From assembly GCA_019828565.1 (NCBI GenBank), contig JAHDYR010000004.1, forward strand, positions 124,001-188,000: 64,000 bases of DNA. The letters are read 5' to 3'. This document shows positions 3,001 to 58,000 of this stretch, piece by piece; within the stretch, counting starts at the first letter, position 1, and each line of letters opens with the position of its first letter. The notes below the pieces were generated by a model. It worked only from the letters and a program-made list of their open reading frames with translations. It ran no database searches and was not told the origin of the DNA. A program made the translations under genes and the position numbers. The stretch comes from Carpediemonas membranifera BICM. Its lineage: Eukaryota; Protista; Fornicata.

Positions 3001-6000
3001 TCAAAAGCAGCTCAGAGGTCACACAGATTGGGCGAACAGTGTCGTCTTCTCTCCCAGACGGGTCGACCCTGCTCTCTGGGTCAAGGACAACACCGCCAAG
3101 CAGTGGCCCTCCATCAAGTCGCCAGAGATCGGGGAGGTCTGCGCCCAGCCCACACTCGGCGCCGACATCCGCCTGCCGTCCGACGACTCGCCCCTCTACC
3201 TCGCCGACCTGGCGCGGGTCGTCATCCACATCCTCGCCACGGGCCTGCCCCGCTCCTTCAAGATGAGGCTGGCCTTCCCTCCCGCGACAATCACGTTGGA
3301 CAAGAACAGGTATTTCCAAGACGAGGCGCCGATAATTCTGAGGCTGACAGAGCTGATCAAATCTTTCAACACCCACATATCTCAGCGTATGGCCGAGAAG
3401 ATCCTCCGCGAGCTTTCAGCTGTCGTGAATACGATCACCGCCGACTCGGCTCCGGAGTCCCTGCGCGCCTTAGTGCGTCGTCTCGACCAATACAAAGAGC
3501 ACCGCGAGATGCAGCTGGGGATGGGCCCCGTTCGTCTGCCGTGCGTGACCCTGTTCTGCGGAGGCACCTCGCCGTGGCCGCGTTTGCCCAAGACTTCCTT
3601 GACCTCGTCGACGGGGGCATGAGCCCAAAGATCGCTGTCACCGCTCTGAAAACACTCCGACGGTGCCACACCCGCCGACTATCACGACGCTTCGGAGCTC
3701 GTGCAGACCGCCATCGACGCGTTCATCGCCCAGCCGACGTCCCAGCACGCCGAGCGTATTCCCACGAGCTACACCCACGCCGGCCTGATTCGCGCGCTGG
3801 CGTACACGAAGGAGTACATGGAGGACGCCGAGGAGGAGCTCGCCGAGTACCTGGCGGCCGTCCCCGAGCCTGACCCCCTCGCCATCCTCGTCGAGGCCCG
3901 GATCCGCGGGTCAGCCCCCCTCACGCGGTTCTTCTGCGAGACATTCCCGCAGCTGGCAGAGATTCGCGACGGCCGATGAGCGGTCAACCGACGACAACGA
4001 AGCCGAGCCTCAGCCGCAGCCGGAGTCAGAGGACGACCGCATCCAGCAGGCCTGGGAGCAGTACGGCATGGCCAGCGCCGCGATGGACGAGCTGCTAGCG
4101 ATGAGCGGCATGCGCGCGCTGAAGAGGGAGTGCATCGACATCGCTCAGCAGATCCGCGTCCGCAACGACCCGCGCACTGCGCAGCTCTACGCCGCCACGC
4201 CGATGCAGCTCAACTTCATCCTCAGCGGCAACCCTGGCACGGGCAAGAGCACGTGCGCTAAAGCTGATCCACCGCTTCCTGGCGGACATCGGCGCTCGCG
4301 ATGACACGTTCACCGAGCGCAACGGCGGCACCCTCGCCGACACGTCGCCGCTGGACATCACGAAGGAGTTGGACAGCCTCTTCCCGGCCGGCTTCAGGGG
4401 CACCGTCTTCATCGACGAGGCCTACCAGCTGAACCCCGCCCAGAAGAAGTCGGGCAAGTCAGTCATGGACCGCATCCTGGACGTGGCCGAGACGCGCCGC
4501 GGCGACGTCACGATCATCCTGGCAGGCTACAAGGACGACATGAAGGACCTGCTGGCGACGAGACCCGGGTCTGAACAGCCGCTTCTCGCGCCAGTTCGTG
4601 CTCGAGGACTTCGACAAGGACACGCTGCAGGAGATGTTCACCCAGCTGGCGACCAAGCAGGGCTGGTCCCTCGCCCCGGCAGTTGCCGAGATCGCTGGCC
4701 GTCGCCTCGAGGCGCTTCAAGTCGCGCGACACCTTCGCCAACGGCCGCACCGTCCGCAACATGTTCAGCCAGGCCATCGAGGCTGCGGCCAAGCGCCTCA
4801 TCTTGGGCGGCGAGCACATGCTGCTGCCCGAGGACATCCTCGGACCAGCGCCATCGGCCGACTCGAACCCCGAGCTGCGCCGTCTCCTGGCCGAGCTGGA
4901 CGGCTTGACCGGGCTTGGCGAGGTGAAGGAGGCTGTCCGGGGTCTGCTTCAGACGGCGAAGGTCAACTACGACAACGAGCTCCACCTCCGCCCGCTGCAC
5001 GCCTTCGCACTCAACCGCCTCTTCTTCCGGAAACCCTGGGACGGGCAAGACGACCGTCGCACGCCTGTACGGCCAGATCTTGAAGCACACGGGCCTGCTC
5101 AGCAGCGGCGAGGTCATCGAGAAGCGGCCCAGCGACCTGGTCGGCGACGCCGTGGGGGCAGAGCCGGTCGAGAACGAAAGGCCGCGATCGAGGAGCGCGC
5201 GGCAAAGGTGCTGCTCATCGACGAGTGCTACTCCCTCGACGACGGCGTGTACGGCAAGGAGGCGCTTGACACGATCGTTGAGCGCGTGCACAACAAGCCC
5301 GGCGACGACATCGCGGTGCTCATGCTCGGCTACGAGGAGCCCATCCGCCGCATGCTGCGCAACCAGAACGCGGGGCTGGCGAGCCGCTTCGACCCCGAGC
5401 GCGTTCATCTTTGCCGACTTCGACGACACCGCGCTCGAGGGCCATCCTGAAGCACGCCATCGCCGAAAGCGGCCTCGCGTGCCGCAGAGCTGTCGTTGTC
5501 AGCGCGATACAGCTGCTGGCCAAGGAGCGCGTCAAGCCCAACTTTGGCAACGCCCGCGCTGTGGTCAACCTCGTGAACAAGGCGAAGCGCCACATGATCC
5601 AGCGCGATCAACCTCGCGAAAGATCGCAGTTGCTGATCTCACGCAGGCTGACGACAGCAAGGACCCGTTCGAGCCGCTCGACGGCCTGTACAAAGTCAAC
5701 CACATCCGGCAGAGGCTCGAGGGACCTCGTCCGTATCAAGCAGGGCATGGAGCGGAACGGCAAGTCAGCCGCCTCAATGCTGGTCCGCAACTACGTCTTC
5801 TCGGGCTCCCCGGGCACAGGCAAGACGACCATCGCGCGGTGCATGGCCAAGATCCTCTACCGCCTGGGTGTGCTGGCAACCGACACGTGCAAGGAGGTCG
5901 TCGCACGCGACATGATGGCAAGAGCTACGTGGGGCAGACGCCGGGCCGAGTCAAGGAGCTGATGGACGAGGCGGTCGGCGGCGTCTTCTTCGTGGACGAG

Positions 6001-17580: not shown

Positions 17581-20500
17581 ATGGCTGCCACCAGAGACAC
17601 CTGGACAAACACGAACTTTTGGGACGTCACGATGTCGGACTGCTCAAAGTCGCAAACACCATCCAAATTCAGCGAGATGAATCAGCGACGATGCAGAAAG
17701 TTCGTTCCACGCCTCCCACTTACGCAGCTGGTACGTTCCCAATCCCGTTGGTGCAGAGATGCAGCCCGCGGCGAGTTCAAGAGCGCTTACGCAGTAGATC
17801 TGAGCAATGGTGCGTCCTCCCCGAGAATCTCACGCAGCAGCGAGTGCAGAGCAGTAGAGGACATGATCAGCGACGCCACGACGCGCATCTTCGCCCCAGA
17901 TAGCAAGCTCCACCTCAATCCCATCGGATCCTCGCCCCTCACCGCTACAGACCTCACCCGCGTCCTCGACCACCTCTCGACGCGGCCCAGAGAGTTCAGC
18001 ATGAGGCTGACTGAGCCCGACCTCACTGTCACGATGAGGTATGGCAAGCTGGCCGCCGACAAGCCCGACAGCGCCGTCGACGACCTGCTCGCTGCCTGGA
18101 ATGCGAGGATGGCTGAGTGCATCCAGACGATGAAGGGTCACACCAACTGGGTGATCAGCGTCGCCTTCCTCCCCGACGGCGCCATGGTCACTGGGTCATG
18201 GGATGGGACGACCAAGCTGTGGGACAAGCGCGGCGTGTGCAAGACGACGATGAAGCATAGCGGGGCTGTTCGGTGCATCGCCGTCTCCCCGGACGGGTCA
18301 ACCATCGCATCGGGCGGGACTGACCGCAAGATCAAGCTGTGGAGGCGCGGCAGACTCGTCAAGACGCTCGAGGGGCACACCAGGGATGTGAGAAGCGTCG
18401 GTTTCTCCTCAGACGGCAAGACGCTGGTGTCCGGATCATATGACAACACAGTCAGGACGTGGGACGTCGCCACCGGCGTGTGCAGGACGATGGAAGGGCA
18501 CTCAGATTTGGTGCTCTCCGTCGCCATCTCCCCTGACGGCAAGACCATCGTCTCTGGATCAAAGGACAAGACAATCAAGGTGTGGGTCGCTGAGTCGGGC
18601 AGACTCGAGCAGACTCTGGAGGGCCACACGAATTCTGTCGCCGCCGTCGCCATCTCCCCGAACGGCGCTCTGCTGGCCTCTGGGTCTGGCGACCACACCA
18701 TCAGACTCTGGGACACCAGGACCTGGGAGTGCGTCGCCGTCCTCAGGGGGCACGCGAGCTTTGTCCGCAGCGTCGCCTTCTCGCCCGACGGCAGGACCCT
18801 CGCCTCTGGGTCTTGGGACAACACCATCAAGCTCTGGAGCATCGCTAGCGGCGAGTGCTTCGAGACGCTCAGGGGCCATGACGATTGGGTCCGCTGCGTC
18901 GCCTTCTCCCCGGACGGGTCGACCCTGCTCTCTGGATCTGACGACAAAACCGCCAAGTAGTGGTCCCTTGGTCGCTCTCCCGAGCTCACCGCCCTCGACC
19001 AGACCCTCGCCGAGCCTGTCCCGGCCGCGGCCATCGTCCGCCTCGAGGGCACCGTCGCCGACCTCACCCGCGTCCTCGACCACCTCTCGGCGCGGCCCCG
19101 AGAGTTCAGCATGAGGCTGACTGAGCCCGACCTCACTGTCACGATGAGGTATGGCAAGCTGGCCGCCGACAAGCCCGACAGCGCCGTCGACGATCTGCTC
19201 GCTGCCTGGCATGCGAGGATGGCTGAGTGCATCCAGACGATGAAGGGTCACACCGATGACGTGCTCAGAGTCGCCTTCCTCCCCGACGGCGCCATGGTCA
19301 CTGGGTCATGGGATGGGACGACCAAGCTGTGGGGCAAGCGCGGCGTGTGCACGACGACGATGGAGCATGGCGGGGAAGTTTTGTGCATCGCCGTCTCCCC
19401 GGACGGGTCGACCATCGCCTCGGGCGGTGATGACCGCAAGATCAAGCTGTGGGACCAGACCGGCAGACTCGTCAAGACGCTCGAGGGGCACACCGATGTT
19501 GTGAACAGCCTCGCCTTCTCCCGAGACGGCAAGACGCTGGTGTCCGGATCCGATGACAAGACAGTCAGGACGTGGGACGTCGCCACCGGCGCGTGCAGGA
19601 CGATGGAAGGGCACTCAGATTGGGTGCTCTCCGTCGCCATCTCCCCTGACGGCAAGACCATCGTCTCTGGATCGTCTGATGACACGATCAAGGTGTGGGA
19701 CGCTGAGTCGGGCAGACTCGAGCAGACTCTGGAGGGCCACACGAGTTATCTCACCACCGTCGCCATCTCCCCGGACGGCAAGACCCTCGCCTCTGGGTCT
19801 TGGGACAACACCACCAAGCTCTGGAGCATCGACAGCGGCGAGTGCTTCGAGACGCTCAGGGGTCATGCCGATAAGGTGTGGAGCGTCGCATTCTCCCCCA
19901 GACGGGTCGACCCTGCTCTCTGGATCTTCCGACAAGACCGTCAAGCAGTGGCATATCAAGCACTCGCCAGAGATCGAGGAGGTCTGCGCCCGACCCACAC
20001 TCGGCGCCGACATCCGCCTGCCGTCCGACGACTCGCCCCTCTACCTCGCCGACCTGGCGCGGGTCGTCATCCACATCCTCGCCACGGGCCTGCCCCGCTC
20101 TTTTGAGATGAGGCTGGCCCACCCCCGAATGCACCGTCTCTCTTGGTCCTACCGGATTCACGTCGAGCCAAGCCGCCGATGTTGAAGCCCTTCTCGAGCT
20201 ACTCAACCGCCACCTCGTGATGCAGAAACTGTTGACTGAAACACGTGCTCTCGACGCCGTTGACGAAGCGCTGTACGTGGCCGCGGCTCTGAGCGACGCC
20301 AAGCGCCTGCTGGCCGCCGCCGGCCCGCACGCGGAGCAGCACGAGGCGCGAGTGCTCGCGCTGAGGACCGACCTCGCCCGCCTCCAGCCCGTGCAGGCGC
20401 TCGCCAAGGACCCGATGCCCGCGCTCAGGGGCCGCGTCAAGGAGGCGCTGGAGAGGAGCGACGAGCTCCACGCGCACATCATCAGCGGCGACGTCGCCAA

Positions 20501-25827: not shown

Positions 25828-27057
25828 ATCCTTTGGCCGCTGCCTCGCCTCTACATGGCCTGATCGACGGCACGATAGTCTCCCCGGGACGTCCACAGCA
25901 TGCGGCTGTCCTCGCGTGCTTCCATCTCCCACATGCCATCCATCGGGGTGAGCACCGGCCCCTCCGCCATCAGACAGCTCCATGGCGACACCGCCGACCC
26001 CAGCCTGGTTGTTACTAACAGGGCCGGGTACTTTAGCCTCTACGACCCTCGCGCCGATACCTGGGGTGAGGCTGTGAGGGCACACCGACATGCTCTCAAC
26101 ACTCTCGATGTCTCGCCGCATGGGGAGATACTCAGCTCGGGTCGGGACTCGACCGTCAAGCTGTGGGACGCGAGACATCTTACTCGGCCCCTGACGGTCT
26201 TCTCGAACCATAGGTGTCAGCGATCAATGCTGGCTGCCTCGTTCTCGGCCCAAGGCCACATCATCGCCGGCGACGAGCGCGGTGGGGCAGTTGTGTACCA
26301 CAACAACGGCTCGTTCAACAGCCACCCCCACAGAGACCACATCCTGCCCGACGCAGAGCAGGGCGCCCACGTGCTCACGGCTGTAGGGACGAAGCTCGTG
26401 GCTGTGACGGGAGACAGATCGAGGCAACTCGTCGTGTGCGACCTGGGGCCGAGGAAGGAGGCTCATCATTTGATTGGCGGCATCACCCCGCAGTGGGCGG
26501 CGAGTCACGCCATCTCGACGATGGCTGCCACCAGAGACACCTGGACAAACACGAACTTTTGGGACGTCACGATGTCGGACTGCTCAAAGTCGCAAACACC
26601 ATCCAAATTCAGCGAGATGAATCAGCGACGATGCAGAAAGTTCGTTCCACGCCTCCCACTTACGCAGCTGGTACGTTCCCTATCCCGTTGGTGCAGAGAT
26701 GCAGCCCGCGGCGAGTTCAAGAGCGTTTACGCAGTAGATCTGAGCAATGGTGCGTCCTCCCCGAGAATATCACGCAGCAGCGAGTGCAGAGCAGTAGATG
26801 ACATGATCAGAGACGCCACGACGCGCATCTTCGCCCCAGAGGACAAGCTCCACCTCAAGCCCATCGGATCCACGCCCCTCACTGCTACAGACCTCACCCG
26901 CGTCCTCGACCACCTCTCGACATTGGACGGGCTGCCCAGAGAGTTCAGCATGAGGCTGACTGAGCCCGACCTCACTGTCACGATGAGGTATGGCAAGCTG
27001 GCCGCCGACAAGCCCGACAGCGCCGTCGACGATCTGCTCGCTGCCTGGCATGCGAGG

Positions 27058-30000
27058 ATGGCTGAGTGCATCCAGACGATGAAGGGTCACACCGATGACG
27101 TGTTCAGCGTCGCCTTCCTCCCCTGACGGCACCATGGTCACCGGGTCATCAGATGGGACGACCAAGCTGTGGGACAAGCGCGGCGTGTGCAAGATGACGA
27201 TGGAGCATGGCGGGGCTGTTCGGTGCATCGCCGTCTCCCCGGACGGGTCGACCATCGCCTCGGGCGGGACTGACCGCAAGATCAAGCTGTGGAGGCGCGG
27301 CAGACTCGTCAAGACGCTCGAGGGACACACCGATATTGTGAACAGCCTCGCCTTCTCCCGAGACGGCAAGACGCTGGTGTCCGGATCCGATGACAAGACA
27401 GTCAGGTCGTGGGACGTCGCCACCGGCGTGTGCAGGACGATGGAAGGGCACTCAGATTGGGTTCTCTCCGTCGCCATCTCCCCCGACGGCAAGACCATCG
27501 TCTCTGGATCAAAGGACAAGACAATCAAGGTGTGGATCGCTGAGTCGGGCAGACTCGAGCAGACTCTGGAGGGCCACACGAATTCTGTCGCCGCCGTCGC
27601 CATCTCCCCGGACGGCGCTCTGCTGGCCTCTGGGTCTGGCGACAAGACCATCAGACTCTGGGACACCAGGACCTGGGAGTGCGTCGCCGTCCTCAGGGGG
27701 CACGCGAGCTTTGTCTTCAGCGTCGCCTTCTCGCCCGACGGCAGGACCCTCGCCTCTGGGTCTTGGGACAACACCACCAAGCTCTGGAGCATCGACAGCG
27801 GCGAGTGCTTCGAGACGCTCTGGGGTCATGACAGAGATGTGAACAGCGTCGCCTTCTCCCCAGACGGGTCGACCCTGCTCTCTGGATCTGACGACAAAAC
27901 CGCCAAGCAGTGGTCCCTTGGTCGCTCTCCCGAGCTCACCGCCCTCGACCAGACCCTCGCCCAGCCTGTCCCGGCCGCGGCCATCGTCCGCCTCGAGGGC
28001 ACCGTCGCCGACCTCACCCGCGTCCTCGACCACCTCTCGACACGGCCCAGAGAGTTCAGCATGAGGCTGACTGAGCCCGACCTCACTGTCACGATGAGGT
28101 ATGGCAAGCTGGCCGCCGACAAGCCCGACAGCGCCGTCGACGATCTGCTCGCTGCCTGGCATGCGAGGATGGCTGAGTGCATCCAGACGATGAAGGGTCA
28201 CACCGCTGAGGTGCTCAGCGTCGCCTTCCTCCCCTGACGGCACCATGGTCACTGGGTCATGGGATGGGACGACCAAGCTGTGGGACAAGCGCGGCGTGTG
28301 CACGACGATGGAGCATGGCGGGAAGGTTCGGTGCATCGCCGTCTCCCCGGACGGGTCGACCATCGCCTCGGGCGGTGATGACCACAAGATCAAGCTGTGG
28401 GACCAGACCGGCAGACTCGTCAAGACGCTCGAGGGGCACACCAATAATGTGTGGAGCCTCGCCTTCTCCCCGAGACGGCAAGACGCTGGTGTCCGGATCC
28501 TGGGACAAGACAGTCAGGTCGTGGGACGTCGCCACCGGCGCGTGCAGGACGATGGAAGGGCACTCAGATTTGGTGCTCTCCGTCGCCATCTCCCCGACGG
28601 CAAGACCATCGTCTCTGGATCAAGGGATAAGACGATCAAGGTGTGGATCGCTGAGTCGGGCAGACTCTGGAGGGCCACACGAATTCTGTCTTCTCCGTCG
28701 CCATCTCTCCGGACGGCGCTCTGCTGGCCTCTGGGTCTGGCGACAAGACCATCAGACTCTGGGACACCAGGACCTGGGAGTGCGTCGCCGTCCTCAGGGG
28801 GCACACGCACTATGTCAACAGCGTCGCCTTCTCGCCCGACGGCAGGACCCTCGCCTCTGGGTCTGATGACAACACCATCAAGCTCTGGAGCATCGACAGC
28901 GGCGAGTGCTTCGAGACGCTCAGGGATCATGCCGATAAGGTGTGGAGCGTCGCCTTCTCCCCGGACGGGTCGACCCTGCTCTCTGGATCTGACGACAAAA
29001 CCGCCAAGCAGTGGTCACTTGGTCGCTCTCCCGAGCTCACCGCCCTCGCCCAGACCCTCGCCCAGCCTGTCCCGGCCGCGGCCATCGTCCGCCTCGAGGG
29101 CACCGTCGCCGACCTCACCCGCGTCCTCGACCACCTCTCGACGCGGCCCCGAGAGTTCAGCATGAGGCTGACTGAGCCCGACCTCACTGTCACGATGAGG
29201 TATGGCAAGCTGGCCGCCGACAAGCCCGACAGCGCCGTCGACGATCTGCTCGCTGCCTGGCATGCGAGGATGGCTGAGTGCATCCAGACGATGAAGGGTC
29301 ACACCGCTGAGGTGCTCAGCGTCGCCTTCCTCCCTGACGGCACCATGGTCACTGGGTCATGGGATGGGACGACCAAGCTGTGGGACAAGCGCGGCGCCTG
29401 CAAGATGACGATGGAGCATGGTGGGAAGGTTCGGTGCATCGCCGTCTCCCCGGACGGGTCGACCATCGCCTCGGGCGGTGATGACCACAAGATCAAGCTG
29501 TGGGACCAGTCCGGCAGACTCGTCAAGACGCTCGAGGGACACACAAATAATGTGTGGAGCCTCGCCTTCTCCCCAGACGGCAAGACGCTGGTGTCCGGAT
29601 CCGATGACAAGACAGTCAGGTCGTGGGACGTCGCCACCGGCGTGTGCAGGACGATGGAAGGGCACTCAGATTTGGTGCTCTCCGTCGCCATCTCCCCTGA
29701 CGGCAAGACCATCGTCTCTGGATCAAAGGACAAGACAATCAAGGTGTGGGTCGCTGAGTCGGGCAGACTCGAGCAGACTCTGGAGGGCCACACGAATTCT
29801 GTCTTCTCCGTCGCCATCTCCCCGGACGGCGCTCTGCTGGCCTCTGGGTCGTGGGACAGCACCATCAGACTCTGGGACACCAGGACCTGGGAGTGCGTCG
29901 CCGTCCTCAGGGGGCACACGCACTTTGTCTTCAGCGTCGCCTTCTCGCCCGACGGCAGGACCCTCGCCTCTGGGTCTGGTGACAACACCAAGCTCTGGAG

Positions 30001-32340
30001 CATCGCTAGCGGCGAGTGCTTCGCTACGCTCAGGGGTCATGCCGATAAGGTGTGGAGCGTCGCCTTCTCCCCAGACGGGTCGACCCTGCTCTCTGGATCT
30101 GACGACAAAACCGCCAAGCAGTGGTCCCTTGGTCGCTCTCCCGAGCTCACCGCCCTCGACCAGACCCTCGCCGAGCCTGTCCCGGCCGCGGCCATCGTCC
30201 GCCTCGAGGGCACCGTCGCCGACCTCACCCGCGTCCTCGACCACCTCTCGGCGCGGCCCAGAGAGTTCAGCATGAGGCTGACTGAGCCCGACCTCACTGT
30301 CACGATGAGGTATGGCAAGCTGGCCGCCGACAAGCCCGACAGCGCCATCGACGATCTGCTCGCTGCCTGGAATGCGAGGATGGCTGAGTGCATCCACACG
30401 ATGAAGGGTCACACCAACTGGGTGTTCAGCGTCGCCTTCCTCCCTGACGGCGCCATGGTCACTGGGTCATGGGATGGGACGACCAAGCTGTGGGACAAGC
30501 GCGGCGTGTGCAAGACGACGATGGAGCATGGCGGGTCTGTTCGGTGCATCGCCGTCTCCCCGGACGGGTCGACCATCGCCTCGGGCGGTGATGACCACAA
30601 GATCAAGCTGTGGGACCAGACCGGCAGACTCGTCAAGACGCTCGAGGGGCACACCAATGATGTGAGAAGCGTCGCTTTCTCCCGAGACGGCAAGACGCTG
30701 GTGTCCGGATCCGATGACAAGACAGTCAGGACGTGGGACGTCGCCACCGGCGAGTGCAGGACGATGGAAGGGCACTCCCATTTGGTGCTCTCCGTCGCCA
30801 TCTCCCCTGACGGCAAGACCATCGTCTCTGGATCAAAGGACAAGACAATCAAGGTGTGGGTCGCTGAGTCGGGCAGACTCGAGCAGACTCTGGAGGGCCA
30901 CACGAATTCTGTCTTCTCCGTCGCCATCTCCCCGGACGGCGCTCTGCTGGCCTCTGGGTCTGGCGACAACACCATCAGACTCTGGGACACCAGGACCTGG
31001 GAGTGCGTCGCCGTCCTCAGGGGGGCACGCGAGTTCTAGCAGTGTCGCCTTCTCGCCCGACGGCAGGACCCTCGCCTCTGGGTCTGGTGACAACACCAAG
31101 CTCTGGAGCATCGCTAGCGGCGAGTGCTTCGAGACGCTCAGGGGCCATGACGATTGGGTCCGCTGCGTCGCCTTCTCCCCGGACGGGTCGACCCTGCTCT
31201 CTGGATCTGACGACAAAACCGCCAAGTAGTGGTCCCTTGGTCGCTCTCCCGAGCTCACCGCCCTCGACCAGACCCTCGCCGAGCCTGTCCCGGCCGCGGC
31301 CATCGTCCGCCTCGAGGGCACCGTCGCCGACCTCACCCGCGTCTCGACCACCTCTCGGCGCGGCCCCGAGAGTTCAGCATGAGGCTGACTGAGCCCGACC
31401 TCACTGTCACGATGAGGTATGGCAAGCTGGCCGCCGACAAGCCCGACAGCGCCGTCGACGCCATGCTCGCTGCCTGGCATGCGAGGATGGCTGAGTGCAT
31501 CCACACGATGAAGGGTCACACCGATGACGTGACCAGCGTAGCCTTCCTCCCTGACGGCGCCATGGTCACTGGGTCATGGGATGGGACGACCAAGCTGTGG
31601 GACAAGCGCGGCGTGTGCACGACGATGGAGCATGGCGGGTCTGTTCGGTGCATCGCCGTCTCCCCGGACGGGTCGACCATCGCCTCGGGCGGTGATGACC
31701 GCAAGATCAAGCTGTGGAGGCGCGGCAGACTCGTCAAGACGCTCGAGGGGCACACCAGGGATGTGAGAAGCGTCGCCTTCTCCCCAGACGGCAAGACGCT
31801 GGTGTCCGGATCCGATGACAAGACAGTCAGGTCGTGGGACGTCGCCACCGGCGTGTGCAGGACGATGGAAGGGCACTCAGATTTGGTGCTCTCCGTCGCC
31901 ATCTCCCCTGACGGCAAGACCATCGTCTCTGGATCAAAGGACAAGACAATCAAGGTGTGGGACGCTGAGTCGGGCAGACTCGAGCAGACTCTGGAGGGCC
32001 ACACGAATTCTGTCTTCTCCGTCGCCATCTCCCCGGACGGCGCTCTGCTGGCCTCTGGGTCGTGGGACAGCACCATCAGACTCTGGGACACCAGGACCTG
32101 GGAGTGCGTCGCCGTCCTCAGGGGGCACACGCACTTTGTCTTCAGCGTCGCCTTCTCGCCCGACGGCAGGACCCTCGCCTCTGGGTCTGGTGACAACACC
32201 ATCAAGTTCTGGAGCATCGACAGCGGCGAGTGCTTCAAAACGCTCAGAGGTCACACAGATTGGGCGAACAGTGTCGTCTTCTCTCCAGACGGGTCGACCC
32301 TGCTCTCTGGGTCAAAGGACAACACCGCCAAGCAGTGGCC
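27058..32340 (+). repeat. Tandem array of five ~1.11-kb WD40-propeller cassettes
   Basis: Spacings 1111, 1101, 1110 and 1107 bp; each has 7 WD40 blades plus a ~80-aa linker. Confidence 0.95.
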
Positions 32341-35300
32341 CTCCATCAAGTCGCCAGAGATCGAGGAGGTCTGCGCCCAACCCACACTCGGCGCCGACAT
32401 CCGCCTGCCGTCCGACGACTCGCCCCTCTACCTCGCCGACCTGGCGCGGGTCGTCATCCACATCCTCGCCACGGGCCTGCCCCGCTCCTTCAAGATGAGG
32501 CTGGCCTTCCCTCCCGCGACAATCACGTTGGACAAGAACAGGTATTTCAAGACGAGCGCCGATAATTCTGAGCTGACAGAGCTGATCAAATCTTTCAACA
32601 CCCACATATCTCAGCGTATGGCCGAGAAGATCCTCCGCGAGCTTTCAGCTGTCGTGAATACGATCACCGCCGACTCGGCTCCGGAGTCCCTGCGCGCCTT
32701 AGTGCGTCGTCTCGACCAATACAAGAGCACCGCGAATGCAGCTGGGGATGGGCCCCGTTCGTCTGCCGTGCGTGACCCTGTTCTGCGGAGGCACCTCGCC
32801 GTGGCCGCGTTTGCCCAAGACTTCCTTGACCTCGTCGACGGGGGCATGAGCCCAAAGATCGCTGTCACCGCTCTGAAACACTCCGACGGTGCCACACCCG
32901 CCGACTATCACGACGCTTCGGAGCTCGTGCAGACCGCCATCGACGCGTTCATCGCCCAGCCGACGTCCCAGCACGCCGAGCGTATTCCCACGAGCTACAC
33001 CCACGCCGGCCTGATTCGCGCGCTGGCGTACACGAAGGAGTACATGGAGGACGCCGAGGAGGAGCTCGCCGAGTACCTGGCGGCCGTCCCCGAGCCTGAC
33101 CCCCTCGCCATCCTCGTCGAGGCCCGGATCCGCGGGTCAGCCCCCCTCACGCGGTTCTTCTGCGAGACATTCCCGCAGCTGGCAGAGAGATTCGCGACGG
33201 CCGATGAGCGGTCAACCGACGACAACGAAGCCGAGCCTCAGCCGCAGCCGGAGTCAGAGGACGACCGCATCCAGCAGGCCTGGGAGCAGTACGGCATGGC
33301 CAGCGCCGCGATGGACGAGCTGCTAGCGATGAGCGGCATGCGCGCGCTGAAGAGGGAGTGCATCGACATCGCTCAGCAGATCCGCGTCCGCAACGACCCG
33401 CGCACTGCGCAGCTCTACGCCGCCACGCCGATGCAGCTCAACTTCATCCTCAGCGGCAACCCTGGCACGGGCAAGAGCACGTGCGCTAAGCTGATCCACC
33501 GCTTCCTGGCGGACATCGGCGCTCGCGATGACACGTTCACCGAGCGCAACGGCGGCACCCTCGCCGACACGTCGCCGCTGGACATCACGAAGGAGTTGGA
33601 CAGCCTCTTCCCGGCCGGCTTCAGGGGCACCGTCTTCATCGACGAGGCCTACCAGCTGAACCCCGCCCAGAAGAAGTCGGGCAAGTCAGTCATGGACCGC
33701 ATCCTGGACGTGGCCGAGACGCGCCGCGGCGACGTCACGATCATCCTGGCAGGCTACAAGGACGACATGAAGGACCTGCTGGCGACGAACCCGGGTCTGA
33801 ACAGCCGCTTCTCGCGCCAGTTCGTGCTCGAGGACTTCGACAAGGACACGCTGCAGGAGATGTTCACCCAGCTGGCGACCAAGCAGGGCTGGTCCCTCGC
33901 CCCGGCAGTTGCCGAGATCGCTGGCCGTCGCCTCGAGCGCTTCAAGTCGCGCGACACCTTCGCCAACGGCCGCACCGTCCGCAACATGTTCAGCCAGGCC
34001 ATCGAGGCTGCGGCCAAGCGCCTCATCTTGGGCGGCGAGCACATGCTGCTGCCCGAGGACATCCTCGGACCAGCGCCATCGGCCGACTCGAACCCCGAGC
34101 TGCGCCGTCTCCTGGCCGAGCTGGACGGCTTGACCGGGCTTGGCGAGGTGAAGGAGGCTGTCCGGGGTCTGCTTCAGACAGCGAAGGTCAACTACGACAA
34201 CGAGCTCCACCTCCGCCCGCTGCACGCCTTCGCACTCAACCGCCTCTTCTTCGGAAACCCTGGGACGGGCAAGACGACCGTCGCACGCCTGTACGGCCAG
34301 ATCTTGAAGCACACGGGCCTGCTCAGCAGCGGCGAGGTCATCGAGAAGCGGCCCAGCGACCTGGTCGGCGACGCCGTGGGGCAGAGCCGGTCGAGAACGA
34401 AGGCCGCGATCGAGGAGGCGCGCGGCAAGGTGCTGCTCATCGACGAGTGCTACTCCCTCGACGACGGCGTGTACGGCAAGGAGGCGCTTGACACGATCGT
34501 TGAGCGCGTGCACAACAAGCCCGGCGACGACATCGCGGTGCTCATGCTCGGCTACGAGGAGCCCATCCGCCGCATGCTGCGCAACCAGAACGCGGGGCTG
34601 GCGAGCCGCTTCGACCCCGAGAGCGCGTTCATCTTTGCCGACTTCGACGACACCGCGCTCGAGGCCATCCTGAAGCACGCCATCGCCGAAAGCGGCCTCG
34701 CGTGCCGCAGAGCTGTCGTTGTCAACGCGATACAGCTGCTGGCCAAGGAGCGCGTCAAGCCCAACTTTGGCAACGCCCGCGCTGTGGTCAACCTCGTGAA
34801 CAAGGCGAAGCGCCACATGATCCAGCGCGATCCAACCTCGCGAAAGATCGCAGTTGCTGATCTCACGCAGGCTGACGACGGCAAGGACCCGTTCGAGCCG
34901 CTCGACGGCCTGTACAAGGTCAACCACATCCGGCAGAGGCTCGAGGACCTCGTCCGTATCAAGCAGGGCATGGAGCGGAACGGCAAGTCAGCCGCCTCAA
35001 TGCTGGTCCGCAACTACGTCTTCTCGGGCTCCCCGGGCACAGGCAAGACGACCATCGCGCGGTGCATGGCCAAGATCCTCTACCGCCTGGGTGTGCTGGC
35101 AACCGACACGTGCAAGGAGGTCGTCGCACGCGACATGATGGCAGGCTACGTGGGGCAGACGCCGGGCCGAGTCAAGGAGCTGATGGACGAGGCGGTCGGC
35201 GGCGTCTTCTTCGTGGACGAGGCTTACGGCCTTGGAGAGGGCATGTTCGGCAAGGAGGCGATCGAGACGATGCTCAGCGAGATGACGTCGGACAAGCACA

Positions 35301-36002
35301 AGGGCAAGACCGTCGTCGTCCTGGCGGGCTACCGCGCCGATCTCGACCGCATGATGGACGTCAACGCCGGCGTCCGCTCGCGCTTCACCGAGCCGATCGA
35401 CTTCCCCGACTGGTCGGCGGCCGACTGCACCAGCTTCATCGCGGGCAAGCTCGAGGGGAGCACCTCAAGTTCGGCTCAAACGAGCAGGCCGCTCTGCGCA
35501 GCCACATCGAGGCCGTTGTTGGCCGGGCTTCCTGGGCCAACGCACGAGACGCCAACACGATCTTCGAGGACCTGCTACGCCAGCAGGCGATCCGCGCCGC
35601 TTCGGTCGTCGAGGCTGAACCTTCGATCGCGGCCGATGACGTCGACGCCGCCATGGTCAAGTGCAAGCGGAACCACCCTGAGAGCGCCAGCCTGCCGCAT
35701 CTCGTCGAGGAGCAGCCAGTCGCCCTCGCCACCGACAGCGAGGTCCAGCCCAGACGCGAGACGCGGCAGGACGTCAGAGTTGAGCAAGTCGAGGAAGTCG
35801 ACGAGACTGTCGATGTGGTGACTCGCGTTGAGCGCGACGAGGGCGTAACCGACGAGATCTGGGAGGAGCTGGAGCTGGCCAAGCGCGAGGAGCAGCGCCG
35901 TCGGGAGGAGGAGGAGCGGCGTCTGCGAGAGATCGAGGAACAACTCAAGCGTGAGAAAGAGGAGAAGGCGCGCCGCGAGCTCGAGCGCCGGAAACGGGAG
36001 GC

Positions 36003-36059
36003 TGAGAGCCAGTGCAGTTTATGTAAACAGATCTACCTGCGCAAGCCAACAATGGCACA
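36003..36059 (+). repeat. 5' LTR (57 bp), copy 2
   Basis: TGAGAGCCAGTGCAGTTTATGTAAACAGATCTACCTGCGCAAGCCAACAATGGCACA; TG...CA ends. Confidence 0.95.
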
Positions 36060-39000
36060 ATATCGATATTCTGCTTCTACAGAATCACACAGTGGTCTAT
36101 CCGTGATAGACGTCTCTTCCCTCACAACGGGGTACGAGATCTGGTTACGGGAAGTCGGTAACGTCAAAAGACCCCGTTCTTTCCCCCACGCATTCACGGC
36201 AAAGACCCTCGAGCTTCTACAAGCCACATGGCGGCCCACCTCCACGTTCCCGACCTTCGAGTCGTTCTGGGACTCCCTTATCCCTGACGTGGTCTCGCAG
36301 GCACAACACGCCAAGCAAGAACCTGACAGACACGCCACGTCGTGCCGCGCAAGATACCGCGCGATCATCGACGCTCTGCAGGACGATCTCTTCTTGCTCT
36401 GTGCTGCAGCCGCCAACACCTATAAGGACAGCCCGCTTCTCGACCCGGCGATGCGCCGGATGCAGGCTGTTTACGACCGCGCCGAGGCCGAGCTGAACGA
36501 TAAGCTCGCCAGCCTCTGCACGGCCAGCCACGACCGCCACGAGGCGGACCCGGATGCGACCCTCACCTTCGCGACGCTAACGAACCCCCTGGACGACAAA
36601 CCGGCCCGATCGGCCGCGGATGTCGCGAGAATCGTCAACTCTCTCCCGTCAGCGGCAACGGCCGCCCCTCCGCCCCCGTGTCCGTGCGTGACCAGCTTCG
36701 CGCCGAGGCCAGGACCATCCTGCCTCACCTGTACCTTACCCTGATGCCAACACTCGACCGCGGTGCACGCCTCAAGGCCATCACAAGCAAGGGCACCCAA
36801 CTGTACGGCCAGAACGCGGCCCACCGCCTTAACACTCTGCGCCTGCAGAAGGCGTGCGACGGGTACAACCCCGTCGTCGAGGCCGATGGCTACCATAAGA
36901 TCCCCGACAGCGCCCTCCGCGCTGCGGTCCGGTCTGTCGCCCTCAAGGGATACGACGACGACGCGATCCCGCTATACGAGGCGCTGATCGAGCGGGATTC
37001 GGACGGCAACTGGCGTCCCGCCCGCGACTGCATAGACGCCCTCTCGACCCTCGAGACCGACCATCTCGGCCAGATCGTCGTCCCCAATGGCGCGAGTCGG
37101 ACCTCCGCCTGTTCGCCGCGGACGACCGCGTTATCTCCGTGGGCAAGATCGCCACCATGTCCATCACACTCCCTGGCATGGATGGCAAAACCGTCACGCT
37201 CGACTGGGACGTCCACATGATCACAGGCACCAGCGACAGGATGCTGATCGGCAAGGACCTCCTCAGGCACATCGGCTACGTCCTCAACGACCGCCTACTG
37301 ATACTCCCGTCCGAGAAGCCGGATGATAAGGACGATCTAGAAGAGCACAACATGATCGACGCCGACGTCTTCGAAGCGGCGTCAACCTCGGACTCGAAGC
37401 ATTCGCTCGCCGTCACGATCCCGGACGACCACGGCACCGAGTTCGCCAACAAGGTCCGAAGCATCGTCGAGGAGTTCGATGAGGTGTTCGACCCGGCTCT
37501 CCCGCCCGAAGGCAGCAAACTACAGCCTCACAAGATCGAACTCACACGCGATTTTTCACCTCAAGTGCCGTCCTCGACAGCTTGTCGGAGAGGCTGGCTC
37601 AGCCGCCCTCTCCGAGATCGAGAAGATGAAGAAGCTCGGCATCATACGAGACAGCCAGTCCGAGCACGCCAGCCGCCACACGATGGCAACCAAGAAGAAC
37701 GGCGAACCCCGCTTCTGCGTCGCATTCAACGATCTTAACGACGCCACGAAGGACGACGCCTTTCCCCTCCCCGATCTGAGGGACCTGCCCCACGAAGCCG
37801 GCGGATGCTCTTACTTTGCATCACTCGATCTCCGGTCCGGATACTGGCGGCAGCTGATGGAGCCGGCCAGCATCCACCTTACCTCGTTCGTAGTCCCCGG
37901 GCACCAATTCGAGTTCCTCAGGGTCCCGTTTGGACTTAAGAACGCCCCCTCCAAGTTTCAACGAGCGATGGAGGCCGTGCTAGATGGCATCCCCGGCCAC
38001 CGGGTCTACGTGGATGACATATTCCTCTACGCACGGACCGAAGAAGGATTCCTCAACACCCTGAGACTCACCCTCCAGAGAGCCAAGGACAACCGCCTGC
38101 GCCTCCGTGCGGACAAATGTACCATCGGCGCCGCCGAAGTGGAGGTCTGCGGATTCATCATCAACAGCTCCGGCCGCTCGGTGAGCCCAGGCCGCGTCGC
38201 CGCGCTGAAGGAGCTGCCCGCCCCCCACCACCGTCACAGAGCTCAGACGCACGATGGGCAAGTTTAACCACCTCGCAAACTACCTCCCGCAACTCAGCTC
38301 AGCCACAGCCCCCCTCAACGCCCTCCTCAAGGGGTCACCCAAGAAGCTAGACAAGCTCCCTTGGACTGAGGAACACGACAAGGCATTCGCGGCTCTGGAA
38401 GGAGCTGTGCACCGACAACAAGGCATTGGCACTACCCAACCCTGACCTGCAAGTGGACACTTGAGACAGACGCGTCCACAATCGCAGCCGGCGGAGTGCT
38501 GTGGCAACACGAGGGCGACACGAAGAAACCCCTCGCGTACTTCTCAAAGACGTTCACAGAGACCCAACGCCGCTGGGCGACGGTCGAGCAAGAGCTCTAC
38601 GCAGTCATATACTGCATCACCCGGCCAGAGTTTAGCCAGATTCTCAAGCTGAAGCCATTCACCGTACTCACAGATCACAAGAACATCGTGTGGATGATTC
38701 GCAAGGCTGAGGAAGGGACGCGCAAGCTCACGCGATGGAGACTCATCCTATCCGAGTACCCCTTCGACATCATGCATATCGCAGGGACAAATAACGTCGT
38801 CGCGGACGCCCTCTCCCGCCCCAGCGGCGCGGCGATCAGCGAAATCGCCAGCAGCACCCACCGCTTCGACATTCAGCAGGCCCACGCTGGAGCCAACGGC
38901 CATGCTTCGATCAAACAAACGATCGCCCATCTCAAGGAAGCCGGCAAGACCTGGTCTTCCATGAACTCAGACGTCGCGGAGCACGTCGCGACTTACCCAG

Positions 39001-46708: not shown

Positions 46709-49700
46709 ATGGCTGCCACCAGAGACACCTGGACAAACACGAACTTTTGGGACGTCACGATGTCGGACTGCTCAAAGTCGCAAACACCATCCAAATTCAG
46801 CGAGATGAATCAGCGACGATGCAGAAAGTTCGTTCCACGCCTCCCACTTACGCAGCTGGTACGTTCCCAATCCCGTTGGTGCAGAGATGCAGCCCGCGGC
46901 GAGTTCAAGAGCGCTTACGCAGTAGATCTGAGCAATGGTGCGTCCTCCCCGAGAATCTCACGCAGCAGCGAGTGCAGAGCAGTAGAGGACATGATCAGCG
47001 ACGCCACGACGCGCATCTTCGCCCCAGATAGCAAGCTCCACCTCAATCCCATCGGATCCTCGCCCCTCACCGCTACAGACCTCACCCGCGTCCTCGACCA
47101 CCTCTCGACGCGGCCCAGAGAGTTCAGCATGAGGCTGACTGAGCCCGACCTCACTGTCACGATGAGGTATGGCAAGCTGGCCGCCGACAAGCCCGACAGC
47201 GCCGTCGACGACCTGCTCGCTGCCTGGAATGCGAGGATGGCTGAGTGCATCCAGACGATGAAGGGTCACACCAACTGGGTGATCAGCGTCGCCTTCCTCC
47301 CCGACGGCGCCATGGTCACTGGGTCATGGGATGGGACGACCAAGCTGTGGGACAAGCGCGGCGTGTGCAAGACGACGATGAAGCATAGCGGGGCTGTTCG
47401 GTGCATCGCCGTCTCCCCGGACGGGTCAACCATCGCATCGGGCGGGACTGACCGCAAGATCAAGCTGTGGAGGCGCGGCAGACTCGTCAAGACGCTCGAG
47501 GGGCACACCAGGGATGTGAGAAGCGTCGGTTTCTCCTCAGACGGCAAGACGCTGGTGTCCGGATCATATGACAACACAGTCAGGACGTGGGACGTCGCCA
47601 CCGGCGTGTGCAGGACGATGGAAGGGCACTCAGATTTGGTGCTCTCCGTCGCCATCTCCCCTGACGGCAAGACCATCGTCTCTGGATCAAAGGACAAGAC
47701 AATCAAGGTGTGGGTCGCTGAGTCGGGCAGACTCGAGCAGACTCTGGAGGGCCACACGAATTCTGTCGCCGCCGTCGCCATCTCCCCGAACGGCGCTCTG
47801 CTGGCCTCTGGGTCTGGCGACCACACCATCAGACTCTGGGACACCAGGACCTGGGAGTGCGTCGCCGTCCTCAGGGGGCACGCGAGCTTTGTCCGCAGCG
47901 TCGCCTTCTCGCCCGACGGCAGGACCCTCGCCTCTGGGTCTTGGGACAACACCATCAAGCTCTGGAGCATCGCTAGCGGCGAGTGCTTCGAGACGCTCAG
48001 GGGCCATGACGATTGGGTCCGCTGCGTCGCCTTCTCCCCGGACGGGTCGACCCTGCTCTCTGGATCTGACGACAAAACCGCCAAGTAGTGGTCCCTTGGT
48101 CGCTCTCCCGAGCTCACCGCCCTCGACCAGACCCTCGCCGAGCCTGTCCCGGCCGCGGCCATCGTCCGCCTCGAGGGCACCGTCGCCGACCTCACCCGCG
48201 TCCTCGACCACCTCTCGGCGCGGCCCCGAGAGTTCAGCATGAGGCTGACTGAGCCCGACCTCACTGTCACGATGAGGTATGGCAAGCTGGCCGCCGACAA
48301 GCCCGACAGCGCCGTCGACGATCTGCTCGCTGCCTGGCATGCGAGGATGGCTGAGTGCATCCAGACGATGAAGGGTCACACCGATGACGTGCTCAGAGTC
48401 GCCTTCCTCCCCGACGGCGCCATGGTCACTGGGTCATGGGATGGGACGACCAAGCTGTGGGGCAAGCGCGGCGTGTGCACGACGACGATGGAGCATGGCG
48501 GGGAAGTTTTTGTGCATCGCCGTCTCCCCGGACGGGTCGACCATCGCCTCGGGCGGTGATGACCGCAAGATCAAGCTGTGGGACCAGACCGGCAGACTCG
48601 TCAAGACGCTCGAGGGGCACACCGATGTTGTGAACAGCCTCGCCTTCTCCCGAGACGGCAAGACGCTGGTGTCCGGATCCGATGACAAGACAGTCAGGAC
48701 GTGGGACGTCGCCACCGGCGCGTGCAGGACGATGGAAGGGCACTCAGATTGGGTGCTCTCCGTCGCCATCTCCCCTGACGGCAAGACCATCGTCTCTGGA
48801 TCGTCTGATGACACGATCAAGGTGTGGGACGCTGAGTCGGGCAGACTCGAGCAGACTCTGGAGGGCCACACGAGTTATCTCACCACCGTCGCCATCTCCC
48901 CGGACGGCAAGACCCTCGCCTCTGGGTCTTGGGACAACACCACCAAGCTCTGGAGCATCGACAGCGGCGAGTGCTTCGAGACGCTCAGGGGTCATGCCGA
49001 TAAGGTGTGGAGCGTCGCATTCTCCCCAGACGGGTCGACCCTGCTCTCTGGATCTTCCGACAAGACCGTCAAGCAGTGGCATATCAAGCACTCGCCAGAG
49101 ATCGAGGAGGTCTGCGCCCGACCCACACTCGGCGCCGACATCCGCCTGCCGTCCGACGACTCGCCCCTCTACCTCGCCGACCTGGCGCGGGTCGTCATCC
49201 ACATCCTCGCCACGGGCCTGCCCCGCTCTTTTGAGATGAGGCTGGCCCACCCCGAATGCACCGTCTCTCTTGGTCCTACCGGATTCACGTCGAGCCAAGC
49301 CGCCGATGTTGAAGCCCTTCTCGAGCTACTCAACCGCCACCTCGTGATGCAGAAACTGTTGACTGAAACACGTGCTCTCGACGCCGTTGACGAAGCGCTG
49401 TACGTGGCCGCGGCTCTGAGCGACGCCAAGCGCCTGCTGGCCGCCGCCGGCCCGCACGCGGAGCAGCACGAGGCGCGAGTGCTCGCGCTGAGGACCGACC
49501 TCGCCCGCCTCCAGCCCGTGCAGGCGCTCGCCAAGGACCCGATGCCCGCGCTCAGGGGCCGCGTCAAGGAGGCGCTGGAGAGGAGCGACGAGCTCCACGC
49601 GCACATCATCAGCGGCGACGTCGCCAAGATGCGCTCGAAGACGCTGCTCCGGAGTGTCAAGTTCGGCCCCGTCGTCCTCAACTGCCTCGACCGCGAGGGT

Positions 49701-54957: not shown

Positions 54958-55028
54958 ATCCTTTGGCCGCTGCCTCGCCTCTACATGGCCTTATCGACGG
55001 CACGATAGTCTCCCGGGACGTCCACAGC

Positions 55029-58000
55029 ATGCGACTGTCCTCGCATGCTTCCATCTCCCACATGCCATCCATCGGGGTGAGCATCGGCCCCTCCGCCATC
55101 AGACAGCTCCATGGCGACACCGCCGACCCCAGCCTGGTTGTTACTAACAGGGCCGGGTACTTTAGCCTCTACGACCCTCGCGCCGATACCTGGGGTGAGG
55201 CTGTGAGGGCACACCGACATGCTCTCAACACTCTCGACGTCTCGCCGCATGGGGAGATACTCAGCTCGGGTCGGGACTCGACCGTCAAGCTGTGGGACGC
55301 GAGACATCTTACTCGGCCCCTGACGGTCTTCTCGAACCATAGGTGTCAGCGATCAATGATGGCTGCCTCGTTCTCGGCCCAAGGCCACATCATCGCCGGC
55401 GACGAGCGCGGTGGGGCAGTTGTATACCACAACAACGGCTCGTTCAACAGCCACCCCCACAGAGACCACATCCTGCCCGACGCAGAACAGGGCGCCCACG
55501 TGCTCACGGCTGTAGGGACGAAGCTCGTGGCTGTGACGGGAGACAGATCGAGGCAACTCGTCGTGTGCGACCTGGGGCCGAGGAAGGAGGCTCATCATTT
55601 GATTGGCGGCATCACCCCGCAGTGGGCGGCGAGTCACGCCATCTCGACGATGGCTGCCACCAGAGACACCTGGACAAACACGAACTTTTGGGACGTCACG
55701 ATGTCGGACTGCTCAAAGTCGCAAACACCATCCAAATTCAGCGAGATGAATCAGCGACGATGCAGAAAGTTCGTTCCACGCCTCCCACTTACGCAGCTGG
55801 TACGTTCCCAATCCCGTTGGTGCAGAGATGCAGCCCGCGGCGAGTTCAAGAGCACTAACACAGTGGATCTCAACAATGGTGCGTCCTCCCCGAGAATCTC
55901 ACGCAGCAGCGAGTGCAGAGCAGTAGATCACATGATCAGAGACGCCACGACGCGCGTCTTCGCCCCAGAGGACAAGCTCCACCTCAATCCCATCGGATCC
56001 TCGCCCCTCACCGCTACAGACCTCAGCCGCGTCCTCGACCACCTCTCGACATTGGACGGGCTGCCCAGAGAGTTCAGCATGAGGCTGACTGAGCCCGACC
56101 TCACTGTCACGATGAGGTATGGCAAGCTGGCCGCCAACAAGCCCGACAGCGCCATCGACGATCTGCTCGCTGCCTGGAATGCGAGGATGGCTGAGTGCAT
56201 CCACACGATGAAGGGTCACACCAACTGGGTGTTCAGCGTCGCCTTCCTCCCTGACGGCGCCATGGTCACTGGGTCATGGGATGGGACGACCAAGCTGTGG
56301 GACAAGCGCGGCGCCTGCAAGATGACGATGGAGCATGGTGGGACTGTTCGGTGCATCGCCGTCTCCCCGGACGTGTCGACCATCGCCTCGGGCGGGACTG
56401 ACCGCAAGATCAAGCTGTGGGACCAGACCGGCAGACTCGGCAAGACGCTCGAGGGGCACACCAATAATGTGAGAAGCCTCGCCTTCTCCCGAGACGGCAA
56501 GACGCTGGTGCCCGGATCCGATGACAAGACAGTCAGGACGTGGGACGTCGCCACCGGCGAGTGCAGGACGATGGAAGGGCACTCAGATTGGGTGCTCTCC
56601 GTCGCCGTCTCCCCCGACGGCAAGACCATCGTCTCTGGATCATGGGATTATACCATCAAGGTGTGGATCGCTGAGTCGGGCAGACTCGAGCAGACTCTGG
56701 AGGGCCACAAGAATCCTGTCAACGCCGTCGCCATCTCCCCGGACGGCGCTCTGCTGGCCTCTGGGTCTGGCGACCACACCATCAGACTCTGGGACACCAG
56801 GACCTGGGAGTGCGTCGCCATCCTCAGGGGGCACACGCACTATGTCAACAGCGTCGCCTTCTCGCCCGACGGCAGGACCCTCGCCTCTGGGTCTGGTGAC
56901 AACACCATCAAGTTCTGGAGCATCGACAGCGGCGAGTGCTTCAAAACGCTCAGAGGTCACACAGATTGGGCGAACAGTGTCGTCTTCTCCCCGGACGGGT
57001 CGACCCTGCTCTCTGGGTCAAAGGACAAGACCGCCAAGCAGTGGTCCCTTGGTCGCTCTCCCGAGCTCACCGCCCTCGACCAGACCCTCGTCCAGCCTGT
57101 CCCGGCCGCGGCCATCGTCCGCCTCGAGGGCACCGTCGCCGACCTCACCCGCGTCCTCGACCACCTCTCGACGCGGCCCAGAGAGTTCAGCATGAGGCTG
57201 ACTGAGCCCGACCTCACTGTCACGATGAGGTATGGCAAGCTGGCCGCCGACAAGCCCGATAGCGCCATCGACGCCATGCTCGCTGCCTGGCAAGCGAGGA
57301 TGGCTGAGTGCATCCAGACGATGAAGGGTCACACCGATGGCGTGATCAGCGTCGCCTTCCTCCCCGACGGCGCCATGGTCACTGGGTCATGGGATGGGAC
57401 GACCAAGCTGTGGGACAAGCGCGGCGTGTGCACGACGACGATGGAGCATGGTGGGAAGGTTCGGTGCATCGCCGTCTCCCCGGACGGGTCAACCATCGCC
57501 TCGGGCGGTGATGACCGCAAGATCAAGCTGTGGAGGCGCGGCAGACTCGTCAAGACGCTCGAGGGACACACCAGGGATGTGAGAAGCCTCGCATTCTCCC
57601 CAGACGGCAAGACGCTGGTGTCCGGATCATATGACAAGACAGTCAGGTCGTGGGACGTCGCCACCGGCGAGTGCAGGACGATGGAAGGGCACTCAGATTG
57701 GGTGCTCTCCGTCGCCATCTCCCCCGACGGCAAGACCATCGTCTCTGGATCATGGGATTATACCATCAAGGTGTGGGTCGCTGAGTCGGGCAGAGTCGAG
57801 CAGACTCTGGAGGGCCACACGAATTCTGTCGCCGCCGTCGCCATCTCCCCGGACGGCGCTCTGCTGGCCTCTGGGTCATTGGACAAGACCATCAGACTCT
57901 GGGACACCAGGACCTGGGAGTGCGTCGCCGTCCTCAGGGGGCACGCGAGTTCTGTCCGCAGTGTCGCCTTCTCGCCCGACGGCAGGACCCTCGCCTCTGG

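Follow-up and report, generated by a model that had tools for sequence, protein, structure and literature searches.

In donor-cassette antigenic variation, variable cassettes are moved between loci by homology, and the exchange ends at short conserved flanks. In Podospora anserina, the repeats of the hnwd and HET-D/E WD40-repeat receptors of the NLR type (NLR, NOD-like receptor; NOD, nucleotide-binding oligomerization domain) evolve in concert, both inside a paralogue and from one paralogue to another (PMC1805685, PMC2873952), and NLR repertoires of fungi show combinatorial assortment of domain architectures (PMC4986451). The present analysis concerns a family of WD40-repeat genes in the protist Carpediemonas membranifera BICM, five of which lie in a stretch of 64,000 nucleotides (nt) of contig JAHDYR010000004.1 (assembly GCA_019828565.1, positions 124,001 to 188,000 of the forward strand), hereafter the window. 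In these genes, numbered 1 to 5 along the window, a head of WD40 propellers is followed by a stretch of about 156 nt, the adaptor, and then by one of several C-terminal tails; the point at which adaptor gives way to tail is the junction. The original prediction, made from the letters of the window, took the adaptor for a plug joining one sensor array to alternative effectors. It is more probable, in our reading, that the adaptor is half of a species-restricted module, that the abrupt loss of DNA identity at the junction (the cliff) marks where homologous exchange stops, at the border of the conserved core of the module, and that heads have been combined with at least five kinds of tail.

The C. 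membranifera assembly comprises 24.2 Mb in 69 contigs and is based on Nanopore R9.4 and Illumina reads (PMC8516963). Genome searches reported below cover 24.24 Mb in 69 contigs; the window is part of the contig designated C5.

The junction in five genes of the window

Five exact plus-strand copies of ATGAGGCTGGCC, at 3263, 20108, 32495, 49236 and 58311, are present in the whole window, where 0.54 are expected; none of 100 shuffles gave five. The alignment of the five copies is nearly invariant over the ~156 nt upstream of the junction in all of them, and past ATGAGGCTGGCC the sequences fall into two groups that cannot be aligned from the first codons on. Translation across the junction gives ...LATGLPRSF[KE]MRLA, continued by FPPATITL at 3275 and 32507 and by HPECTVSL at 20120, 49248 and 58323. 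Pfam detects three copies of PF00004 (AAA) with AAA_lid_6 past 32507, and ankyrin repeats (Ank) with a PF07714/PF00069 kinase past 20120, 49248 and 58323. Copies, alignment and translations thus bear out the original observation of a common 156-nt stretch that diverges right after ATGAGGCTGGCC, and Pfam agrees with its assignment of a triple AAA+ tail to two of the genes and an ankyrin-kinase tail to the other three.

The five junctions are not independent, being two junction types multiplied by a recent segmental duplication of ~29 kb. Within this duplication, 3275-8209 and 32507-37400 are 98.1% identical and 7543-17269 and 36745-46400 are 96.5% identical; the kinase tails of the window are ~98% alike. 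Identity between genes 2 and 4 is 100% over ~2.2 kb (17940-20120 and 47068-49248), bar a one-base homopolymer difference just past the junction at 20120. Gene 5 is the sole uninterrupted reading frame among the five (1812 codons). Many frame breaks occur within the repeats of the assembly, and two of the five copies are broken within 60 nt past the junction, by an extra C at 20120 and by indels after 3275. An intron at the junction was rejected, because the frame of gene 5 and frames of 1000-2374 amino acids (aa) at other loci read through it.

A repeated module that spans the junction

The linker upstream of every propeller resembles the adaptor. A hidden Markov model (HMM) built from three seeds places one module ahead of each propeller and each tail in all five genes (in gene 3 at 26833, 27926, 29027, 30137, 31245 and 32351), and its matches reach ~35 residues beyond the junction in both tail classes, covering 32351-32629 in gene 3. 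These profile matches and the predicted structure identify an alpha/beta repeat domain of ~85 aa, here termed the module; its last copy begins with the 156-nt adaptor, which makes up the first half, and the second half lies in the tail that had been regarded as divergent. Among 21 diverse modules aligned, the invariant or near-invariant positions are D30, L31, P44, F47, M49, L51 and P54. The junction falls between A52 and F53, so that the conserved P54 is past it. For a copy with the AAA tail (class A), AlphaFold2 predicts one compact domain with helices (H) and strands (E) in the order H2-8, E16-19, H28-41, E46-53, E55-60, E66-68 and H73-94, with a predicted local distance difference test (pLDDT) score of 91.7 overall and 93-95 across the junction. 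A copy with the ankyrin-kinase tail (class B; 58167-58451) is predicted with the same element order (pLDDT 91.1), its third strand being E55-60/61. In these models the junction is the turn of a predicted beta-hairpin formed by strands 2 and 3, in the middle of the module. An HMM made from the second halves of modules other than those of class A matches class A exactly from 32510, with an independent E-value (i-E) of 0.003 among 2835 pieces; an HMM made from propeller-side second halves only does not reach the class A second half. The notion of the adaptor as a separate unit is not borne out, since module HMM, conserved positions, AlphaFold2 models and second-half HMM all span the junction.

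Of the window's 18 modules, 17 carry an identical 9-mer, ATGAGGCTG, and all three types (N, I and T) are among them; the remaining one is a frame-broken copy (g1_I2, the eighth listed) that gives no pattern match. N- and I-type modules do not differ in the second half that stands ahead of a propeller, and T-type first halves always stand after the last propeller. Repeat units are spaced at 1101-1113 nt, and the 1110-nt units are 87-100% identical within and between genes. Each 1110-nt unit holds one module (~85 aa) and ~285 aa of WD40, a length that suggests a propeller of seven blades.

Module matches are found in at least 150 places on at least 16 contigs of the genome. Eight modules stand in a row before the ankyrin-kinase tail of protein P0001 and seven in P0010, twelve tandem modules are found in P0006 (KAG9393451.1, 1678 aa), which has no Pfam domain, and P0020 and P0024 likewise display tandem modules only and no Pfam domain. 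The proteins with tandem modules alone (P0006, P0020 and P0024) indicate that the module is a general repeat of C. membranifera and not merely a connector of propeller and tail. A module profile search of 1.84 billion representative proteins gave 31 matches. Species look-up covers 20 of these, 11 being without look-up; all 18 looked-up matches that carry the module are from C. membranifera, and the two further ones are unrelated. P0026 (from a metagenome) and P0027 (from the Sequence Read Archive) were rejected as relatives, both being tandem-repeat proteins that repeatedly match only 28-41 profile positions. So far the module has been detected only in C. membranifera. Pfam scans of the open reading frames (ORFs) of the family give no row covering it, and fold searches with the 95-residue model, a size at which weak scores are no proof of a new fold, returned no credible relative (Foldseek against PDB, best E 0.67; VIA wide, best Z 4.7; ESM atlas, TM at most 0.51).

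Tails beyond the junction

A search of the genome with the 156-nt adaptor, the check proposed with the original prediction, finds at least 27 near-full copies, plus shorter and more distant matches. The near-full copies are mostly on contig C5, between 6 and 325 kb, with others on C26, C49, C63, C8 and C54. Translation past the junction gives more than two continuations, and Pfam analysis of longer stretches and annotated paralogues displays at least five tail architectures from about the same point. These are ankyrin repeats with a tyrosine kinase-like (TKL) kinase, directly or after extra module copies (class B); three AAA modules (class A); an atypical (APH/Kdo-like) kinase with an IBR zinc finger; an atypical kinase with RhoGEF, as in P0010; and a microbial-type PARG-like domain with an atypical kinase, as at locus L040. 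The suggestion that there might be only the two tails seen in the window, joined once long ago, is at odds with this number, and the combinatorial reading, for which further effector types at the same junction had been named as support, is strengthened by it.

The AAA modules of class A match PF00004 three times at 2.8e-37 and PF17866 (AAA_lid_6) at 1e-16. Their nearest solved relatives are EccA1 (9lur) and CbbX (3zuh, 3syk), and the best NCBIfam models are TIGR02881, TIGR03922 and TIGR02880 (spore_V_K, EccA and CbbX), all scoring below their cut-offs. The AAA core with AAA_lid_6 and these relatives place the modules, at the level of domains only, in the CbbX/SpoVK/EccA clade. The class B kinase is a predicted full-length TKL-type kinase, matching PF07714 at 5.8e-43 over profile positions 4-258 of 258.

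The chain of P0010 (KAG9396441.1, 2314 aa) is unusual in consisting of WD40 propellers, seven modules, an atypical kinase and RhoGEF. At L040:4357-8910:- (C26, ~713-718 kb) a PARG-like (macro-fold) domain stands ahead of the atypical kinase, in a frame that is shifted relative to the adaptor in the assembly.

DNA identity and shared haplotypes

Genes of different tail classes have a DNA identity of 0.91-0.94 along the adaptor, which falls to 0.35-0.5 right after the junction; within a class it is 0.94-0.97 through the junction. At third codon positions the between-class identity is 0.94 in the adaptor versus 0.24-0.46 in the second half of the module, where amino-acid identity is 0.18-0.39. 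This drop at third positions indicates that the adaptors share recent ancestry and that the tails are old, as is the half of the module that belongs to them; purifying selection could not by itself produce it.

The switch point had been described as fixed. Divergence is indeed sharp, but it occupies a zone that depends on the pair of classes compared and not a single position: the offset of the cliff from the junction is +1 where class A is compared with the rest, +6 or +7 where B, C and D are compared with one another, +18 between class B and L019, and -2 for the divergent L024. The cliff falls at the 3' edge of LPRxFxMRL (ATGAGGCTG), the module's conserved core, and the stretches of the adaptor that distant paralogues match in DNA, q87-156 or q101-156 of the query, all end at q156. 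Other cliffs within modules occur after EPDLTV in L006:385-627 and after DLTRVLD in L019:2545-2811, so breakpoints inside the module are not unique to the reported site. Periodic dips of identity are also seen inside the propeller.

Haplotypes of the adaptor and of the region upstream do not follow tail class. The adaptor of L013, which has an AAA tail, is that of the kinase genes L010, L011 and L014, at d=1. The adaptor of L005 (class C) is nearest to those of the class A (AAA) genes, at d=2, and that of L007, a class D gene (atypical kinase with IBR), has L012 (class B, ankyrin-kinase) as its nearest neighbour. The kinase gene L017 carries the upstream haplotype of the AAA genes. Four gametes are present at 40 of 91 informative site pairs within the 156-nt adaptor. 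Since adaptor and propeller haplotypes are common across tail classes, heads and tails are being recombined. The predicted combinatorial arrangement therefore stands in so far as the same head is found on different C-terminal enzyme tails; a purpose-built plug is not required, as the edge of homology-dependent exchange would suffice.

Interpretation and alternatives

In this family one module stands ahead of every WD40 propeller, presumably seven-bladed, and of every C-terminal tail. Under the interpretation that we favour, clustered paralogues would be kept near-identical in their propeller cassettes and in the terminal module's first half, heads being exchanged by homologous recombination or gene conversion whichever tail follows, whereas each tail, with its own second half of the module, is old and diverged. 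Exchange tracts would start in the near-identical propellers, enter the terminal module and resolve no further than the last pairing block, ending at the cliff because LPRxFxMRL (ATGAGGCTG) would be the last place at which paralogous DNA can pair. The net effect would be variable propeller heads on at least five enzyme tails. The module could serve as a structural spacer or hinge, and the propellers may form binding surfaces that control the tails.

Several points weigh against this interpretation. For the second half of class A, the sequence gives a weak signal of homology (i-E 0.003), and part of the case comes from AlphaFold2. Gene conversion is a presumed mechanism, what is seen being its footprint in a single assembly. 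L028, an 'old' paralogue with amino-acid identity of 0.60 before and 0.53 after the junction, was tried as an unexchanged control and was only partly useful; its synonymous identity is still higher upstream (0.69 before versus 0.32 after the junction), so that it is no clean control. Whichever classes are paired, the cliff stays within 20 nt, where passive tract ends might be expected to scatter more widely, and selection for a fixed boundary may add to its sharpness. Near-identical repeats in an assembly from Nanopore R9.4 and Illumina reads may be mis-polished or partly collapsed, possibly creating some of the mosaics. Finally, the unitig of the AAA tail starts at 32493 and no unitig bridges the junction; unitigs end at branches of the graph.

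The sharpness of the cliff is what a selected joint would also predict, one in which the propeller and the module's first half have adapted to each other, as have the tail and the second half, selection fixes the boundary and any head drives any output. The boundary stays between -2 and +18 nt in all class pairs, each half of the module goes with its neighbour (N- and I-type second halves before propellers, T-type first halves after the last propeller), and the arrangement is common to at least five tail architectures. Such a joint would nevertheless be oddly placed for a functional boundary, inside one compact predicted domain and in a hairpin, and where it lies follows entirely from where the conserved core of the DNA ends; we regard it as an unlikely main cause. 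It is compatible with an edge of homologous exchange and may act beside it, loss of homology and selection not being separable here. Improbable to a greater degree is the bolder proposal that the conserved core (LPRxFxMRL, ATGAGGCTG) is a dedicated recombination joint at which heads would often be re-assorted, perhaps in a regulated or somatic way, with outputs of the kinase, ATPase and ubiquitin-ligase kinds. C. membranifera reportedly lacks end joining by Ku and depends on DNA transactions based on recombination (PMC8516963). If the proposal were true, the family would be a recognition repertoire made of cassettes and devoid of a NOD, resting on a domain that occurs nowhere else.

Two further alternatives are an error of assembly and a single old fusion. 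A long-read assembler may have collapsed the repeats or joined them chimerically, so that some junctions would not exist in the cell. The read data are short-read unitigs, in two rows that are apparently one data set (X1 = X2). They carry an additional C after 31342 (in the module at 31245) and an additional G after 35454, exactly at frame breaks of the assembly, which suggests homopolymer indel errors in the Nanopore-based sequence; some of the breaks are thus likely assembly errors, or intact versions exist in other copies. These differences, the use of R9.4 reads, the many frame breaks in repeats and the lack of a unitig across the junction all speak for an artefact. Its probability is nonetheless very low, as the WD40-AAA junction is found at five loci with different flanks and variants, junctions of the kinase class are found at no fewer than 12 loci on several contigs, frames run uninterrupted across the junction both in the window and elsewhere, and the word depth of the unitigs, 86-110 in the adaptor versus 29 in the AAA tail, is as expected of a real shared repeat. 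It is harder still to credit a single old fusion for each tail class, with the adaptor kept by purifying selection alone and no ongoing exchange. The adaptor does end with the most conserved motif of the module, as such constraint would have it, but third-position identity is 0.94 in the adaptor and saturated just after it, haplotypes are common across classes, and four gametes are present within the adaptor. An edge of homologous exchange at the conserved core accounts for these observations with the greatest probability.

Features of the window and neighbouring genes

Coordinates of the main features are collected in Table 1. Between members of the family lie genes for ankyrin-repeat DHHC palmitoyltransferases (22793-23986 and 52353-53117), the latter being the duplicated copy, beside the N-terminus of gene 5. 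Remnants of a Ty3/gypsy-type retroelement (RVT_1, RT_RNaseH, integrase zinc-binding and core domains) occupy 37479-39614, with a copy within 7543-17269; they adjoin both AAA-tail genes downstream and are inside the ~29-kb duplicated block. An Rfam scan of the 64-kb window found no RNA family.

Table 1. Junction features of the WD40 family in the window (positions from the first letter of the window)
Feature	Position	Strand	Remarks
Adaptor, gene 1	3119..3274	+	AAA tail from 3275; frame breaks shortly past the junction
Adaptor, gene 2	19964..20119	+	Ankyrin-kinase tail 20120-22259; extra C just past the junction in the assembly
Adaptor, gene 3	32351..32506	+	5' half of the terminal (T-type) ~85-aa module; predicted helix 0, strand 1, helix 1, strand 2
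Adaptor, gene 4	49092..49247	+	Ankyrin-kinase tail 49248-51388
Adaptor, gene 5	58167..58322	+	Copy modelled with AlphaFold2 over 58167-58451
ATGAGGCTG (Met-Arg-Leu of the core LPRxFxMRL)	32495..32503	+	3' edge of DNA similarity
Second half of the terminal module, gene 3 (predicted strand 3, strand 4, helix 2)	32507..32629	+	Specific to the AAA-tail class
Head of gene 3, five ~1110-nt units, each module plus WD40 propeller	26833..32350	+	From repeat families and module HMM
Tail of gene 3 (class A), ~310-aa spacer without assignment and three putative CbbX/SpoVK/EccA-like AAA+ modules	32507..36744	+	From Pfam; frame break near 35454
Gene 5	54963..60401	+	N-terminal region, two module-plus-propeller units, T-module, helical spacer, ankyrin repeats, predicted TKL-type kinase

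Significance of the family

The arrangement displays the construction of a receptor-like gene family, both large and fast-evolving, in a free-living protist that branches deeply and has no detectable NLRs. For protein evolution it offers a clean natural case of domain reassortment whose breakpoint is inside a predicted fold and whose two halves are of very different age, and for the evolution of immunity it offers a candidate recognition repertoire without a nucleotide-binding switch. A caution also follows, as the sharp switch point probably results from the end of homology and is, by itself, no evidence of a designed adaptor. New here are the identification of the adaptor as half of a module, the great difference in age between the two halves, and the explanation of the switch point by the edge of the conserved core. 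A literature search for Carpediemonas and WD40 returned nothing on this family, and the genome paper (PMC8516963) does not mention it.

Comparison with described systems

The analogy with NLR-like proteins drawn in the original prediction holds for evolutionary design and fails for membership of the NTPase class. As in NLRs and other signal transduction ATPases with numerous domains (STAND), a repeat domain is combined with variable signalling domains, here WD40 arrays with at least five tails; the partners are C-terminal in this family and N-terminal in NLRs. No central NACHT or NB-ARC domain is detected in the family, and a six-frame search of the whole genome gave no match to PF05729 or PF00931 at E<=0.001. 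Neither domain appears in the Pfam tables of the family ORFs; in the scans of full-length and N-terminal sequence the 25 best matches listed are mostly WD40, so that for the part upstream of the first propeller the negative comes chiefly from the search of the genome. Weak rows for nSTAND3 and AAA_16 contain no stretch that passes and fall on Walker-A sites of the AAA modules. Unlike CbbX, SpoVK and EccA, the class A proteins carry three AAA modules in one chain behind WD40 propellers, with scores below the NCBIfam equivalog cut-offs.

Gene-conversion cassette systems share with this family the movement of variable cassettes by homology and the ending of exchange at short conserved blocks. They differ in that here there is no sign of programmed, expressed-site-directed or somatic exchange, the footprint in the one assembly being that of germline exchange among paralogues. 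The closest likeness in detail is to the fungal receptors. As in hnwd, near-identical WD40 units are exchanged between loci, which is evident here from units of 87-100% identity, nearest neighbours across tail classes and mosaics. Clustered paralogues, varying repeat number and the assortment of repeats with different enzymatic or signalling domains are likewise common to hnwd, to fungal NLRs and to this family. Unlike hnwd, in which the exchanged unit is a single 42-aa blade, the unit exchanged in C. membranifera is a whole propeller with its module (1110 nt), the variable partners (kinases, triple AAA, IBR, RhoGEF and PARG-like) are C-terminal, and the boundary of exchange runs through a species-restricted domain.

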